Notes under the pieces: generated by a model
What the model saw: the letters and a program-made list of their open reading frames with translations, nothing else
The model's database searches: none
What the model was told of the DNA's origin: nothing
Translations under genes and position numbers: made by a program
In this document: positions 1-18,800 of the stretch, piece by piece
Layout: each line of letters opens with the position of its first letter
Position numbering within the stretch: the stretch's first letter is position 1
From: Vitrella brassicaformis CCMP3155
Taxonomy: Eukaryota; Protista; Chromerida
DNA: 64,000 nucleotides
NCBI GenBank assembly: GCA_001179505.1
Contig: CDMY01000318.1
Location: 59,215 to 123,214 of the forward strand
Direction of reading: 5' to 3'

Positions 1-168
1 GAGAAGACATGGGTCAACGTGACTGTCTGATATCGCCTCACAGGATGGTGAAGCGGCAGCGTCAGTTGATTCATGAATTCGATCCATCTCTCTTTGCGAG
101 CTCAATTGTGAGTTGCGAAGCGAAGGGCCAGAAGGGAAGCGCATTCCCGAGTCAATTCGCCGGCATAG

Positions 169-10011: not shown

Positions 10012-10807
10012 ATGGCTGCTGTCCCCGCATCGTCACTCTGTAAGCGCACACAAAGATCCGAAGAGGCGGGGGGGTAGATGTGCGTCACGCGTTCCCTCGC
10101 GCCGTTTGGTGTCGGGAGAGGCGTGTGTGCTCGCTGGGGCGACGTGTGTGGCACTGTTGGTCCTCATCTTGGCTGTGTGTGTTGTGATCTGTGTGCGTCA
10201 GCTGACTCCGACCGTCAGGAGCTTCTGTGCTCCTACGCGTCCCTCGTTCTTTATGAAGAGGGCATCCAGATCACGGTGAGTGACCAACACAACACCACAA
10301 CACCACACAGCACAGCACAAAGCACCTCCTCTTCTCCCCTCGTGTGTCAGCGCGAGAACCTTGAGAAGCTCATCGCTGCAGCGGGCGGCAAGGTCGAGCC
10401 TTACATGCCGATGTTGTTCGCGAGGGCCCTCGAGGGGAAGGACATCAGCGCCATGATGATGAACACCGGCGGAGGACCTGCACGTAGGCACACACCACAC
10501 CCCATCGCTCACCGTCGTTTCTCCTTCGAATGTGTGTGGTTCTGTCGTTGTGTGCGCGTTGACGTGCAGCCGCTGCTGGTGCTGGTGGTGCGGCAGCAGC
10601 GGCGGGCGGTGCGGCCGCTGCCGGCGGCGGCGAGGCGGCCGCTGAGGAGAAGAAGGAGGAGAAGAAGGAAGAGGAGGAGGTAAGCAGCACAACCAACCAA
10701 GCCACAGACGACAAACCGATCAGTGTGTGACGGCGGGTATGTGTTTGGTGCGCTGTGTCTGTGTTCAGGAGGAGGACGAGGACATGGGCTTCTCTCTGTT
10801 CGACTAA
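10012..10807 (+). CDS. RPLP1: 60S acidic ribosomal protein P1
   Basis: Spliced product MAAVPASSLSDSDRQELLCSYASLVLYEEGIQIT-RENLEKLIAAAGGKVEPYMPMLFARALEGKDISAMM...AAAAGGGEAAAEEKKEEKKEEE-EEDEDMGFSLFD*, with the canonical P-protein C-terminus. Confidence 0.96.
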
Positions 10808-11421
10808 GCCCCGGTATGACGTCTGGCGGTCTGTCTGTCTTGTCTGTTTGTCTGTACGGACAAGCGAGATGGATGGATGGACTGCCACGCCATGTGTGGC
10901 GGTCGGGAGAGGTGTGGTGTCTGTTTGCCTCGTTCGTTCTTCCTTCTGTGATTTGACATCGATGCACATACACACATCAATATGCCACTTGGGTGCCTGA
11001 CTGACCACCTGATGCGACTACACTTGTTTGTCGCCTTAGTGAATCAATGCGAGGTAGATGCAACACAACCCACGAGAGCGATAGAAGTCCTTCAGCGGAA
11101 CAAAGAGGATGTCACAAATGCGTTCTTTGCCTGCCTTTGCATACTCACTCGCACCCACACACACAGACCCATCAAGACAGAGGCGTCCGTGACAGCCTGC
11201 CTCTGCACGAGCATTCCCTCCCTAGTCATGACACTCCCTCTCCCCCACATTCTCACGACAAACTTATTCAGCGCTGTCGACCCTCCACCCCCCCAGCCTC
11301 TTACGCACAAAACCTCTCTGCATATGCCGGTCTCGCATCCACCCACACACACCGATGTATGTATATAAACCACTCAGTCCCCTCGCCATTCTGCCTTATC
11401 CACATGTTCCTTCCTCTCTCC

Positions 11422-14400
11422 TCATTGGCCGCCAGCTGTGACTGGCACTCTCCGGCCACCCATCGCGGCCGCAGCAGCTGAGGGGAGGCCCTGGCTGGGC
11501 GGTTGGTCCGCCCTCGGCCGACCGCGAGTGGCCTTGGGCTTCACGGCAGAAGCCGACTTTTCCTCAGGCGCCTGCTCTTCATGTGGCAGAACACGGAACG
11601 TCTGATGCAGCACCACATACACCACAACACGCGGTCTGCACCTGCACAGCGCTGTGGCGGCCTCTCTCAGCTCAGATACCTTGATGTGTGGTGCGATAGC
11701 CTTGAGGCCCCCCCTGTAGCGCATGTGCAGCGGGGACGGCCGCGAACAGAACTCCTCAAACAGCGTGACCCTCTCGTCAACAGGGAGCAGCCGTGTGGCC
11801 TCCCCCCTCCCGGCCTTCTCACGCACATGGTGCGGCAGGTGCGGGTGCAGCAGACGGTCGAACAGATGGGGCAGCGTCAGCGAGTCGATGGCCGAGTAGC
11901 GCACCTGGTCTTTACTGAGCGGGCGGAATCCCCATGAAGAGCACTGCTCCGTCTTGTCCAGAGTGTGGCCGAGGATGGACCAGCAGGCGCCTTTCAGACC
12001 TTTGATTGCCGTCTTGGGCAGACCAATAGTCTTGGCCGCTGACCTGCACACGTGCACATGAACCGAGAGATGAGAGAGAATGCACGGCCGGCTGGCTCCT
12101 TTGTTCTCTTGGGTGCCTGCCGGTGTTTCACTCACTTGGACAGCTCGTGAAGGTCGACCAGTTTGTTGAGCCGCTTGAAGCACGACATGTGGGGATAAGA
12201 CGCCGCCAGACGACGGACCTGCCACACAGGGAGACAGACACATGTGCCCACAGAAAGGCAGCACTTGGTGTGTGGGTGCCCTTACGTCTCCGGCGCAAGA
12301 GTAGCCAACTTTGAGGATGCCATAGGATCGGAACAGCTCGCCCAGCACCTTGTCGAGCGCCGCCTCCCTCTCAGTCAATGTCACACCCTGACATCCAGCA
12401 CACAAAATAAGACACACACAACAGCCGCCGTCAATCACGCCACCCGCCCACACAGTAGTCCTGCCCACTCGCTTCTTACCTCCTGCTGCTGATCGTCGCC
12501 GGACGGCGAGTCCCCGTTGCCGTCTCGCTGCTGCTGGTCGACCCCAATGTGCCTGTCCACCCTCTCATGGTGCTCAGTCAGCACCGGCGGCTCATCGGCA
12601 CCCTCTCCCTCGGTCTGCCTCGTCTTCTCCCGGTCCCTCTCCCGATCTCGCTCCACCTGTGCCTTATCGCGGCACCACCATAGCATGTCGATGACCCACG
12701 CCTTGTCCCTCGTCGCCAGGCTGAGGACGGCAACCCTCTCAGGGTTGGCCATCCGGTGCTCGTGCACCCAATCGGACACTTGGGGGGCGTCCCATAGCAC
12801 AGCGGGGGGCATCGGCGTCCGCTTGCTGTGCGTGAGGAAGGTGGGCTGCCACTCGGCGTCGAAGCCGACGCATGAGGGGAGCCGGAGGGCCGTGTGTGTG
12901 AGCGAGTCGTTGAAGGGCGCCATCTGGTCTGCATCGTGGAAGCCGTTGGCGTGTCTCTCGCTGTGCCGCGTGCCGGTGCTGGTGAAGTTGGCGAGAGGAA
13001 ACCCCTCTTTGCGCTCGGCTCGCAGGTCGGCCCTCATCTGGCGCAGCTTCTGGAAGCTGTCAACGACCACGACGGCATCGTCCGTGAGACCCAGGTGCCC
13101 CAGCGTGAGGAACTCATCCTCTCCGCTTTGCTCATGCAACAGCATCGGCAGCTGCAGATGGTCGTGAGCATTGGCATGTGGAGGCCGTCCCTGACCCTCC
13201 TCCAGGCCCCTAGTTTCCCTGTCCGCTGCCACTGCGTCGGCAAAGAACCCCTGGCCACCAAACGCCGCCAAGAGGTCGGGGTCTTCGCTCTTCACTTGTC
13301 GCTCGGCCCTCGCTGCCGCAGCCGCCCTTGCTGCTGCTGCCGCTGGGCCCCACTCCTGCTGCGGAGCCCGCTGCTGCCGTCTTGCTGCTGGCACGACAGG
13401 GGGTCCACGGGGGATGGAACCGGGGGCTGGGGATGAGACGGGTGGTGCCTCGTCTGCCGGTGTCACAGGTTCGTCCTCATCCGTGACCGACAGATCGGCT
13501 TCGACGTCTTTGAGTATCTCGCAGCTGACGCATATGACGTCGAGAGCTGGAGAGGACGACGCAGGGAGGCCGTCCTGCTGTTGCCCCCTGTCACGATACC
13601 GGGGGATGCCCGTGATGTACACACGCTGCCCTGGGCGGAGCGACCTGACCAACGCACCGGCGGGAACGGACAGGCAGCATTGTGTGTGTGTGGGTGTGCC
13701 AGATGTCTGTACCCACCAGCTCACCTCATCAGCTGAGTTGCTCTGTCCTCACCCAGACGCCTGAAGAGCCCCCACAAGCAAACCAACATGTAGGTGCGAC
13801 TGATCTGAAGCCTGTCTGTGGGTCCCTCGTGTGCCGCGCCTGACCTGATGAGAGTGTGTCCGACAATAAGCTGCACCTCCATGCACTGGCTGGGGTCCCT
13901 GACGCTGCGCCATGCCTTGCGGCTGTGGCAGAGCTGCTCGCTGGCGGGGGCGTCGTCCTCGTAGGGGTCGGGGGGCGGCACCAGCTCCGCAAACACGAGA
14001 CGTTTCGACATCATCCGCTTGGACGCCACCACAGCCACCTGTGTCATCCATGGGAGGCAGAAACGGAGGGAGGGAAGAGGCCATGCAACCGTGCTGGGAT
14101 GAGTGGATGGCTTCTGTGGCTTGAGTGAGTGGCTGACCAGGTGTATGGTCTCTGAGAACACGTCGACCGTAGGCAGCCGCGCCACCCTCTCCATCCTCGT
14201 GGTCGCTGTCGTGTTCCCGTCACCTGGCTCGAACCCGTTGACCACCGTGGGTGCACTCACCACACCCTGCTGCTGCTGCTGCTGCTGAGGGTGCTGTGGG
14301 GTGAACGTCATGCCGGTCCACAGCCCGACAGCCGAGGAGCTCGCAGGGAGAGTGAACGAGCTGCTCTCCACAAACGGGTGGTCCTCCACAGTTGCATCTC

Positions 14401-15783
14401 CCCCATTCTCACTCCTGAGAGTGCTGAACACCGCCAAAGCCCCACTGACGCCACTCATCAGCACCGCTGCCCCTTCCTCTCGCTCGAGCTCTGGCGGATC
14501 GGGCGGCGTTTCTGCCCTCTCTTGAGTCTCATGTGTTGCGTCTTGTTGCCCCCTAGAGTGTGGTGGTGTCAGGTGAAAAGGCGGCCGCCGGGGAAAATCG
14601 TCAACGGGATCGCTAGATGAAGCTTCTGCTACTGGAGCTGCCTCTGGAGCCGCTCCTGGTGCTGCTGGTGGCGGGGGAGGCGGTGGTGACCTGTATGGTC
14701 CGCTGTCGGTGGCTTGCGGCACCGAATGGGGGACGGAGGAGGAGGGGGGCCGACGGATGACGTCACGGATGTCGGCGCGGGTTACCTCGGCCAGCAGCCT
14801 GGAACACAACACAGAGGGCTCATGAGTGTGTCATGCATTGATGCTGTTAGGTCAGTCATTCGCCTCGTTGCTCACTTTGGCGACAGTTGCATCCTGAGGT
14901 CTGGGTGTGCCGCCCCCGCGTATACGTAGGCCTCCTGCATCAGCCGGGTGTCGATGAGCGTCCTCAGCGGGGTCCGGTGGCCGAAGGGCGGCACAAGGCC
15001 CATCTTGCATCCAGTGATGTACTCGGCATACAGGGGGTCGGCGAGCTTGAGGCTCTCGGGAGCGATAGACAAATAAGAGGCTGCACACATGGCAAGGGGC
15101 AAACAGAAGCATGAGTCATATGTGTGTCCGTCTGCTCATAGCGCGTGTGTGCGTGTGCATCATTTGTCAGTCGCTGTGTGTCTTACCAAGACGGTCACGG
15201 TCGACGCGGTGGTGGGACGCCAGCACAATGAGCACAGGACACATACCCCACTCCTCCACTACAAACACCTGCACACACGATACGATACGCACTCTCTCTG
15301 TCGCATGTGACTGCACCGACATGACTTCGTGCCACCTACCAGTGACTTGGCCCTCTGCCCGCTGCTCACGTCCACCAAGTCCACCTCAGCCGCATCCAGG
15401 AACCTCACATAGCGCTCCTCAGACTGAGGAGACTCCTCCTCGTCAAACACATATGCGATGCCGTTGCTGTCAAGGAATCCTCTCATAAAATCCGGCAACA
15501 GGGCTGCCCGGTCCCTCCACTTGGTTCCCTGCACCGACTGCCGAGCCGCAGGGGACGCTCGCCGCCTCGGCTGCCGAGCCACGTTCGCGTGTGAAGGCAG
15601 AAATGCAATGACGCCGGATGGCCGAGAGAACCGCAGCGGCTTCTCGCCTTGCAACGCGGGAAGGATCAAGAGAAGGAAGAAGCAGAGCATCAGCGCTGTT
15701 CGTGATGGCGGCACAGGCAGGCAGATGGCCTTGCAGATCTTGGTCATCCGCGTATGTAACCGCCGCCTCCGTAGGCGATTCAT
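11422..15783 (-). CDS. Multidomain protein: targeting leader + YbaK/ProX-like tRNA-editing domain + OB-fold + DEDDy 3'-5' exonuclease (EXD3/Mut-7/RNase D-like)
   Basis: Exons join in frame across GT-AG introns: AKSL/VFVVEEWGMCPVLIVLASHHRVDRDRL/...LKLADPLYAEYITGCKMGLVPPFGHRTPLRTLIDTRL...YAGAAHPDLRMQLSPK/LLAEVTRADIRDV (YbaK); VAVVASKRMMSKRLVFAEL...EVQLIVG...SLRPGQRVYITGIPR (OB-fold); VGFDAEW, KVGYSCAGD and QVRYSAIDSL (Exo I-III). Confidence 0.85.
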
Positions 15784-15862
15784 CCATCAATTACAAGCAG
15801 GCTGCAGATCTCCTCTCCTTTTTCGTCGCCCACAGCGAGCTTGCCTTCATCCTCGACCGAAA

Positions 15863-18800
15863 ATGCACTCCTTTCCCGCATCAAATTTCGTCGTTCTCTT
15901 GATTGGGCTGTGGACGACATGTAAGCAGCTTCGAAGACAAGCAAACAATTCATCTCCCCCCCCGCGTTGCTGTGGCGCCTTGTCGTGTCATTTGCACTGC
16001 AGGCAACGCCACAGACTCAGAGTGGGACTTCCATTTCAGTACGGAACGCTTTGAAAGGAGGCGAGCCTCACAACATGCGACGCCTTCATGTGTGTCTGTG
16101 TGCAGAAGAGTTCCCAAATACTACCTGTGAAAATGATGGAGGGACCGGCAACCCGCCAGGGGGCAGATATTTCGAGTGGGCCGTAGACACAGAGGATGCT
16201 CTCTCGTCGGACACACAGCTAAGATGTGTGCAGGTATACAGACGGTATCCCACTTCATGGCGTCACGTTGGATCCGACCATTCCTGAGGTAGACACAGAA
16301 GACAGGAAGCAAGAATGCGCTGCGCTGCGCCTGGCACACCCCTGTTGCTCAGGCTTTGAGCTGCGTGTGAGGCCCTTGTACCTATGCAAGCAGGGACGCA
16401 CACGCATACATCTCTTCGTGTGGGTGCAGACGGACAGCGCGAGGATCTGCGAAATACATCACAGCGTCGCTACTCCCGCATCGACCCCCTCGCCCAACGC
16501 AACGTGCGTCCAGAAGAAAGAGAACGGCACTGCATCGACTGCATGTATGTCGCACACACATACATGTCACGGCAGACAATTACAAATCATACGCGTCACG
16601 AAAGATGATAATCATTACAGATGTGTTTGTGCAGTAAACAGGATCACGGGTTCGTGTCGCCATGGTGACGAGGTGCCGCTGTTCGCCCTCGCAGATGTGA
16701 GCTCCTGGGACATCGGTGATGCTGACTGGAAAAGGCGAATGTGGTGCTCAGAAGAGTGCTTTCAAGACAGGTACATCCGTTGAAGCTGACACATCACCAA
16801 TAATTGAGAGACATGTCCATGCAGGCGTTGTACTGGCATGGAGCACACAAGAAAAGATCACGCTCCCGAGTGTCGCCTGTATTATTCACTAATTGGCTCG
16901 GCTGATGGAGATTCCACCCGTTTCTGCTACTACAAAGCGCACCTGCCTGTGGCATCCATCGTGAATCCTCTTCCCATCTACAACGACACGCCGATCTGAC
17001 AATCGATTTCGGCGAGCCCGTGTCAGCTGGCTTTGCGACGGCCGATCAGCAGTCTAACGTGACCAACGGCACTTTGACTGACATGAGGTATATACAAACC
17101 TATCGTCACATGAGTGTGGCCAGTGTTCATGTGTGCAGGCCGGTGGCTGGCAATGACACGCTCTATGAAGCCGAGATTGTGCCTGACCCGCCAAATGGCG
17201 ACGAGAACGTGACCTATATGCAGCTGACCGTCATGCAGGGCATTGTGCAGGTACATTGCACGTCTTATGCGCACCTGCAGACATGAAACACTGTCTCACA
17301 CATGTCACTAATGCGCAGGACGCGTATGGCAACCCAAATTCTAACACCAACTTCACATTTCAATACGCCTACGGTACACGCAGCCCACGCCCTCTGCATG
17401 GACACACGTAGTGCGTCCTGGCTTCGCATTTGCCTGCCTACTATGCTATTGGGATGTGTGCGCATGCAGTCGCTCCATCTCCCACACCTGTCGTCTCTTC
17501 CACGACGCCGACGCCTATGGTACCTTATGGTGCTGAGAGAAGAGCTCGGTACATCTTTTAAATGTCTGTCTGTCCCTGAATTATAGGTCACAACATCTAT
17601 GCCTCCCGTTGTCTCCACTGTCACATCTGAATCCAGTCCTGCAAGGTGAACTTCATGAATGGGAAATAGACGGCTGAATATATTCCGAAATCCCTCATTT
17701 CTCAGCGCGACCCCCATGCCGGAGGCAACTACACTACTTGCCACGACCATAACACCCACCACGACTACCCCCATGCCCGAGACAACTACCTTACTCGCCA
17801 CGACCATAATACCCACCACGACTACCTCCATGCTCACCACAACCGCCTTGCCCATCGCAACCACGACCACTTCCACACCCACCACGACCAGCATACTGAT
17901 GCCACAAGATACAACTTCGACATCGTCCGAGATCCCACAGAGCACAACAAGTGGACCGACTTCTGCTCAGGCCTTCTCAACAACTGCTCTGCCAGAAACT
18001 ACAAGTATTTTGACATCTTCGGATATCCCACAGGGCACAACAGCTCTATGGACTTCTACCGATGATCCTTCGACTACAAGCACGCCGCCGGCAGCCACAA
18101 GTCCCTCTGCTCCAATTGAGACTTCCTCTGATCTCGCTGACCCTTTTCCTGACCTAACCACTACTACTCAGCCCAGCACAATCATCTTGCCCGGCACGAT
18201 TAGTTTGCCCAGTGCGACTACCCTGCCACAGGATAGCAGCTCGACATCGGCAGAGATTCCACAGAGCACAACAAGTACACCGAATTTTATTAACATCTCC
18301 TCACATACAACGACAATTATGCCAGAAGCTGCAAGCGGTCAAGAGCTTGTGAAAGAGCTGGACGAGATTCTTGATTCGGCCACTCCCCAACATAGCCAAC
18401 CAGACGGTCAGATCCTTGTCGCCCAACAGTTGCAGGACCTTGCTGTTAAGGCTGCCGAGAGCGACTTTGAACAAGATGAGCTGGTGGATTTCCTTGGCAA
18501 GCTGACAAGTATCATTGCGCCGACTGACCACACCAGCGCCAAGCTTCAGCTGAAAATATCGGCTCATGTGATGAATGCCGTTGTGGAAAAAGTCTTTAAC
18601 AATGCTACTGATGCCAAAGATGGCAATGGAACTGATGCCACTAACGTATTGTCCCTCATGGTAAAGGAAGAATGTGGCCTGTCAATCATTCCTCTGTGCT
18701 TTTTGATCCGCTGCAGAACACGGTGTACGAAGATATCAGTACACTCGCCAGGTAAGGGGTACGACACACCTTCACACTGGAACGTACGTACGTGTGTGTC

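Follow-up and report, generated by a model that had tools for sequence, protein, structure and literature searches.

Gene structure and transcript evidence

A nuclear gene on the minus strand of contig CDMY01000318.1 of the chromerid alga Vitrella brassicaformis CCMP3155 (assembly GCA_001179505.1) encodes a protein that joins a YbaK/INS-type aminoacyl-tRNA deacylase domain to a Mut-7-like DEDDy 3'-5' exonuclease domain. The analysis covers a 64,000-nucleotide stretch of this contig (positions 59,215 to 123,214, hereafter the window), and all coordinates given below are those of the window. The coding region occupies 11422..15783: it opens with an ATG at 15783, closes with a stop codon at 11424-11422, and comprises 11 exons encoding 1171 amino acids. 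The protein is best described as three modules carried on long disordered linkers: the YbaK/INS deacylase, a probable OB-type module and the Mut-7-like exonuclease. These modules are preceded by an N-terminal leader and followed by a C-terminal tail (Table 1).

Evidence at the transcript level comes from four of the eight public runs that contain the stretch, compared over positions 11000-16600. The whole locus is covered by single assembled contigs in two runs from different samples and different studies, X5 (contig of 4226 nt) and X6 (contig of 3799 nt). Each contig spans the locus from about 15837 to a point past 11184 with ten segments left out, placing the start of the mRNA at or upstream of 15837 and the reach of the 3' untranslated region (UTR) to at least 11184. 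All ten joints read CT..AC on the plus strand, that is, GT..AG on the minus strand, and delimit introns of 67-106 nt. A partial contig set from a third study, the RNA run X1, contains six of the ten joints observed in X5 and X6, while run X7 contains the locus sequence in unspliced form. Joining the exons yields a 3992-nt mRNA with one open reading frame (ORF) of 1171 codons. One transcript and one polypeptide are taken as established, because the frame never closes over 3.5 kb and ten junctions and because third codon positions are GC-rich (GC3, the GC fraction at these positions, is 0.74-0.81 in every domain region).

A first-pass annotation of this DNA, made from the letters alone, had proposed that the exons splice in frame into one polypeptide. 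The spliced contigs of X5 and X6, together with the partial one of X1, bear this out, with the same joints recurring in contigs of separate studies. The earlier exon model had the locus and the motif positions right, the open frames with all the motifs it named being present on the minus strand, but it overlooked three introns (14039-14137, 13761-13844 and 11602-11679) and a 36-nt microexon. The three introns had been read as coding because their lengths are multiples of three and they are free of stops in the coding frame. The microexon (13760-13725), observed in both the X5 and X6 contigs, encodes 12 residues in the helix region of the OB-like domain.

Retention of these same three introns would insert 33, 28 and 26 residues in frame, respectively, two of the insertions falling inside the OB-like region.

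Table 1. Exons and protein features of the fusion gene; exons are listed from high to low coordinate.
Feature	Residues	Window positions	Strand	Exons	Basis
Exons 1 to 6		15783-15340, 15268-15187, 15080-14876, 14798-14138, 14038-13845, 13760-13725	-	1-6	
Exons 7 to 11		13644-12480, 12387-12286, 12218-12136, 12043-11680, 11601-11422	-	7-11	
Leader	1-95	15499..15783	-		Kyte-Doolittle scan, composition
YbaK/INS-superfamily aminoacyl-tRNA editing domain	~96-262	14744..15498	-	1-4	Pfam, PDB, hidden Markov model (HMM)
Linker 1 (Pro/Ser/Ala/Gln-rich, few hydrophobic residues)	263-455	14165..14743	-		Composition
OB-like region	~456-592	13491..14164	-	End of 4, 5, microexon, start of 7	
Linker 2 (acidic, Pro- and Ala-rich)	593-744	13035..13490	-		Composition
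DEDDy 3'-5' exonuclease	~745-1060	11836..13034	-	7-10	Pfam, PDB, alignment
C-terminal tail	1061-1171	11425..11835	-		Pfam scans of ORF and exon pieces

The YbaK/INS deacylase domain

The ORF of exon 3 matches the Pfam family tRNA_edit (PF04073) with 34.6 bits against a cut-off of 25.5, and this family is present in all 100 of the nearest named Atlas clusters. The best solved relatives are Thermus thermophilus TTHA1699 (PDB ID 2cx5) and Escherichia coli YbaK (PDB ID 2dxa). A search with exon 3 among 185,579 prokaryotic genomes returned 12 loci, mostly from uncultured Chloroflexota and Actinomycetota, with identities of 39-48% for most of them (range 39-68%) and a common TPLRTLID motif. An HMM built from nine of these bacterial relatives, which are ORFs of about 160 residues, aligns to residues 137-259 of the spliced protein with a score of 92 bits.

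Two hallmarks, a catalytic lysine and a GXXXP loop, are shared by all characterised deacylases of the INS superfamily (PMC11286415), and both are found in the algal domain. Lys146, within the segment RAKSLVF (codon 15348-15346), aligns with the invariant lysine of all nine bacterial relatives. The loop G203-L-V-P-P207 (15000-14986) aligns with their G-G-V-A/P-P segment. The assignment as a YbaK/INS-type domain with both catalytic hallmarks of the superfamily is solid at the level of sequence comparison. It agrees with the first-pass annotation, which had recognised a YbaK/ProX-like module with the conserved lysine and a Gly-Pro loop, and the tRNA_edit profile supports that call above its cut-off. 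The N-terminal part of the domain is less well delimited: residues 96-136 lie outside the HMM alignment, which starts at residue 137, and are aligned only by MAFFT, with gaps, while exon 1 alone has no Pfam match.

The domain does not appear to be YbaK sensu stricto, i.e. a Cys-tRNA(Pro) deacylase, judging from its scores with the NCBIfam YbaK equivalogs TIGR00011 and NF007951. Exon 3 reaches 18.7 and 20.4 bits with these models, for cut-offs of 153 and 243, respectively. The nearest bacterial relatives also remain below the NCBIfam YbaK cut-offs, a single one (L006) reaching that of TIGR00011 among those scanned, which did not include L010.

The closest YbaK-like relatives (loci L001-L011) come from uncultured Anaerolineales, Ktedonobacterales and Actinomycetota and are marked by the motifs KSLvF and GH-TPLRTLID. 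This group may represent an uncharacterised cluster of the INS superfamily and is a candidate source of the algal domain. Together with TTHA1699 and YbaK, these bacterial YbaK/ProX proteins belong to the same family as the algal domain, with 39-48% identity over the C-terminal 55-67 residues, and share with it the invariant lysine, the GXXXP loop and the TPLRTLID motif. Whereas they are stand-alone proteins of about 160 residues, the algal domain is the N-terminal module of a protein of 1171 residues provided with a targeting leader.

The exonuclease domain

Exon 10 matches the Pfam family DNA_pol_A_exo1 (PF01612) with 35.1 and 32.3 bits against a cut-off of 23.6, the match being limited to profile positions 106-168, which correspond to the Exo III motif region. 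The best PDB matches are two entries named "Exonuclease mut-7 homolog" (PDB IDs 7jw2 and 7jw6; E-values of 9e-7 and 1e-6, over only ~45 residues). They are followed by NanoRNase C and diDNase, then by DNA polymerase I, and, far more weakly, by RRP6, WRN, EXD2 and RNase D.

By alignment, all five residues of the DEDDy set are in place. Exo I provides D803 and E805 within GFDAEW (12860-12852, minus strand), Exo II provides D963 within SCAGD, whose codon ends exon 8, and Exo III provides Y1040 and D1044 within YSAID (11898-11884, minus strand), a pair that the PDB alignments confirm as well. When the domain is aligned with E. coli RNase D and with RNase D-like ORFs and a PolA exonuclease from metagenome loci, the five positions line up with the catalytic residues of RNase D and of the other members. 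The same alignment reveals two insertions in the algal domain, of about 35 residues after Exo I and of about 75 residues, acidic in nature, before Exo II. Sequence comparison identifies the domain as a DEDDy exonuclease whose closest affinity is probably with the Mut-7 group; the identification of the Exo III segment is solid, and that of the N-terminal half, with Exo I and Exo II, is moderately supported. The first-pass annotation had announced the nuclease with all its catalytic positions, at these very places: Pfam confirms the Exo III part, the alignment supports all five residues, and a Mut-7 homologue is the nearest solved relative. Both enzymatic domain families, together with their catalytic residues, are shown by these sequence comparisons.

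The likeness to MUT-7, Nibbler and EXD3 extends to the DEDDy set and to Exo III, and several features set the algal protein apart. A MUT7-C domain was not found in the Pfam scans of the tail, performed on the read-through ORF and on the exon pieces, while this domain is present in most MUT-7/Nibbler/EXD3 members according to a description of the family (PMC11347159). The algal protein also differs by the large insertions near Exo I and Exo II and by its N-terminal partners, a YbaK domain and an OB-like module, where Mut-7 has an N-terminal domain of another kind.

A metagenome scan with an alignment of exon 10 and RNase D returned mostly bacterial RNase D sequences, as well as two eukaryote-like contigs (L096 and L104) in which the exonuclease has neither a YbaK nor an OB domain nearby. 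The closest exonuclease relative found is L096:5542-6150 (Ga0209390_10000386), which is 48% identical in the Exo III part and 36% identical in the Exo II part (tblastn), the two matches being separated by ~260 additional bases. It belongs to a 1296-codon open frame on an 86-kb contig of 74% GC, and no YbaK-like or OB-like match was detected within 6 kb of it.

The OB-like region

The region between the two linkers was compared with class IIb aminoacyl-tRNA synthetases, whose anticodon-binding domain is an OB fold. An alignment of E. coli LysRS, AsnRS and AspRS, used as a query for homologues, retrieved only near-identical enterobacterial LysRS and was not usable as a profile. A second profile was built from 74 LysRS, AsnRS and AspRS OB domains, including 71 diverse synthetases from viral contigs. 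With filters off, the resulting HMM has a sole match in the 1171-residue protein, at residues 507-561, inside the proposed region. On the region alone, HMMER scores this profile at 7.2 bits, a score reached by one of 2000 shuffles, and hhalign aligns strands 2-4 with a P-value of 1.4e-4 and a probability of 52%. The region also has the top OB-profile score among 300 open frames of at least 100 residues in the window.

Addition of the region to the family alignment with MAFFT (--add) lays out all five strands, with an insertion of ~27 residues in an early loop, and the first strand is created by the true exon 4/5 junction. The base composition of the region (GC3 0.78; GC2, at second codon positions, 0.45) resembles that of the two enzymatic domains and is unlike that of the linkers. 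Taken as a whole, these comparisons suggest that residues ~456-592 probably adopt an OB fold. OB modules of the PF01336 type occur not only in synthetases, but also in nucleases and polymerases.

Leader, linkers and tail

The leader starts with a strongly basic N-region (residues 1-27, net charge +8), followed by a segment (residues 28-45) that the Kyte-Doolittle scan identifies as the sole strongly hydrophobic stretch of the whole protein. Residues 47-95 are basic and rich in Ser, Ala and Pro (11 R+K for 2 D+E). Plastid proteins of chromerids carry a signal peptide directly followed by a transit peptide (PMC6668581), and the leader looks like such a bipartite arrangement, judging from this succession of segments. 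The signal-like segment would direct the protein into the secretory route, and the basic stretch behind it would carry it onward, most likely to the complex plastid; it is the position of this stretch that makes the plastid the most probable destination. The leader may alternatively serve as a signal anchor or be a mitochondrial routing signal. The first-pass annotation had described the protein as organelle-targeted, and the leader does have a hydrophobic signal-like core and then a basic stretch. At 27 residues, the basic N-region is long for a signal peptide, and the internal Met13 and Met32 are possible starts.

At the start of the ORF lie two overlapping start codons (ATGGATG, 15783-15790, minus strand). 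The first of them, at 15787, belongs to another frame and begins a 105-residue ORF wholly inside exon 1, the main ORF beginning 4 nt later, at 15783. Neither ATG has a purine at position -3, and leaky scanning or internal initiation at Met13 or Met32 may matter for the leader.

The three remaining segments are devoid of recognisable domains: no Pfam family was found in linker 1, whose GC3 is lower than that of the domains, nor in linker 2, and the tail, scanned as read-through ORF and as exon pieces, contains neither MUT7-C nor any other Pfam domain.

Database searches and known systems

Searches of large protein collections were made with exon-sized queries. Exon 7 (residues 542-929), which holds the most divergent parts of the protein, has no match among 1.84 billion protein representatives, not even itself. 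The exonuclease ORF likewise has none in a set of 5.8 billion proteins, whether the exon 10 region is scored or the whole ORF is used at E-values up to 10. In both searches of this set, a length window of 0.55-1.75x and a word index keep full-length relatives beyond the range of exon-sized queries. Blank results for the exonuclease say little, because such queries cannot reach proteins this long.

No study linking YbaK-type domains with Mut-7-type or other exonucleases was found in the literature, and a survey of chromerid synthetases does not mention YbaK. The first-pass annotation knew of no characterised protein with this architecture, and the literature search has likewise found none.

Parallels on the deacylase side are found in protists, where INS domains are fused to other modules: a ProXp-ala-like domain is present at the N-terminus of the prolyl-tRNA synthetase (ProRS) of Trypanosoma brucei and Plasmodium falciparum, and another INS domain is found in T. 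brucei MCP3 (PMC11286415). As in the algal gene, a deacylase domain with the lysine and the GXXXP loop is fused or tethered to the tRNA machinery (PMC11286415). In these cases, however, the deacylase is joined to a synthetase or to a dimerisation helix and in none of them to an exonuclease, and the proteins are cytosolic members of multi-synthetase complexes, without a leader of the algal type. On the exonuclease side, nibbling of the tRNA CCA end is a quality-control route in bacteria, carried out by the DEDD exonuclease RNase T (PMC6961547). RNase T offers a functional analogy, as a DEDD exonuclease trimming the tRNA CCA end, but it belongs to the DEDDh subfamily, acts on uncharged tRNA only, and has no attached deacylase.

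Proposed function and alternatives

Domains of the INS family bind the aminoacylated CCA end of tRNA and hydrolyse the ester bond, and DEDD exonucleases require a free 3' end. The aminoacyl group blocks the very 3' end that a DEDD exonuclease needs, and an attached deacylase therefore provides a simple logic for degrading or resetting charged tRNAs. In the proposed sequence of events, the OB-like module would help to hold a tRNA or a tRNA-like RNA by adding RNA affinity. The YbaK domain would then bind the aminoacylated CCA end and cleave the ester bond, and the freed 3'-OH would pass to the exonuclease for trimming or degradation. Such a "deacylate-then-trim" enzyme, which would turn over or monitor organellar tRNA that is charged or mischarged, is tentatively favoured here, with a confidence just below even. 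The OB fold, the compartment, the two activities and their coupling are all inferred from the sequence.

A more specific version of this scheme is doubtful: a plastid "uncharge-and-destroy" enzyme, in which deacylation would be coupled to 3'-5' exonucleolytic digestion of the CCA end, or of the tRNA as a whole, and in which an OB domain derived from a class IIb synthetase would pick the tRNAs. To our knowledge, no such pathway for charged tRNA has been described in any organism.

Several observations weigh against a deacylate-then-trim enzyme. The Mut-7 family is known for trimming small RNAs rather than tRNA, and WRN- and EXD2-type relatives act on DNA. Within the exonuclease, significance is limited to the Exo III third: the large insertions lie in the N-terminal half, and neither Pfam nor the PDB gives a match for the Exo I and Exo II segments when these are searched separately. 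The OB fold is weakly supported and not established. Its exon-wise halves have no match in Pfam, PF01336 (tRNA_anti-codon) included, nor in the PDB by phmmer; Smith-Waterman comparison of the region with E. coli AspRS, AsnRS and LysRS gives a z-score below 1; hhalign against a three-sequence profile returns no match; and recognition by Atlas features on exon 5 remains below threshold. Of the class IIb-type OB fold put forward in the first-pass annotation there remains a weak profile-level signal at the expected place, although neither Pfam nor the PDB provides a match. No orthologue with the YbaK-OB-exonuclease layout was found with exon-sized queries. Finally, the leader has no Phe at position +1, the first Phe past the hydrophobic core being F52, about six residues beyond the likeliest cleavage site. 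The absence of Phe at +1 is weak evidence, because conservation of the post-cleavage Phe is lower in Vitrella (PMC6668581).

The two enzymatic domains may also share a compartment without acting in sequence, an account that is rather unlikely but has several arguments on its side. The exonuclease would mature or degrade organellar transcripts, for instance by trimming the 3' ends of plastid mRNA, of rRNA or of poly(U)-tailed RNA, whereas the YbaK domain would serve as an ordinary trans-editing factor for the organellar ProRS or as a module binding RNA 3' ends. Mut-7/Nibbler relatives, to which the best PDB matches belong, trim RNA 3' ends generally, and the long flexible linkers would permit independent action. 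Furthermore, protist INS domains reside on ProRS and in MCP3 without any sequential chemistry (PMC11286415). The version in which the YbaK domain merely binds RNA is improbable, as its catalytic lysine and GXXXP loop are kept.

A role directed at DNA is less probable still. The exonuclease would be a proofreading or repair enzyme of the WRN, EXD2 or PolA type, assisted by an OB module binding single-stranded DNA, and would act on organellar DNA, the YbaK domain being unrelated or regulatory. The family PF01612 is that of the DNA polymerase A exonucleases, DNA polymerase I, WRN and EXD2 are among the weaker PDB matches, and OB folds of the PF01336 type also bind single-stranded DNA. However, the best PDB matches, the Mut-7 homologue and NanoRNase C, act on RNA. 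Moreover, the conserved aminoacyl-tRNA deacylase domain has no known role on DNA, and the Pfam scans detect no attached polymerase or helicase domain.

An artefact, be it a read-through or chimeric contig over two adjacent genes or a decaying gene with inactive domains, is hardly credible: a contig spanning two genes does not by itself prove one transcript, exon 7 lacks homologues among the 1.84 billion representatives and the exonuclease insertions are unusually large, but the ten joints are identical in contigs of separate studies, one reading frame runs uninterrupted over 3.5 kb and, as it never closes, a second promoter or start could not be accommodated, both enzymes have kept all their catalytic residues, and GC3 is high in all three domain regions. 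A gene-model artefact was rejected on the shared joints, the continuous frame, the retained catalytic residues and the GC3 values.

Neighbouring genes

A divergent gene on the plus strand (~15860-16600) begins less than 100 nt from the 5' end of the fusion gene. Its joints in X5 are of the GT..AG type at 15920/16003, 16038/16106 and 16175/16234, and an odd fourth one is observed at 16289/16430 (TA..AG), with 13 unmatched letters in between. Its two largest open frames have no Pfam family. Downstream, a convergent gene on the plus strand (10078-10683) encodes a domain of the 60S acidic ribosomal protein family (PF00428, 29.4 bits). In X5, the contig of the fusion gene continues to about 10766, and the 3' UTRs of the two convergent genes may be very close together or overlap. 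No paralogue of the fusion gene is present within the 64-kb window.

Significance

Trans-editing deacylases and 3'-5' exonucleases are each well known, and no study was found that reports both in one protein. If the proposed coupling of deacylation to trimming is true, the Vitrella enzyme would represent a new step in tRNA quality control. If it is not, the gene still provides a clean, transcript-verified case of a multidomain RNA enzyme that is specific to its lineage and bears an organelle-type leader.

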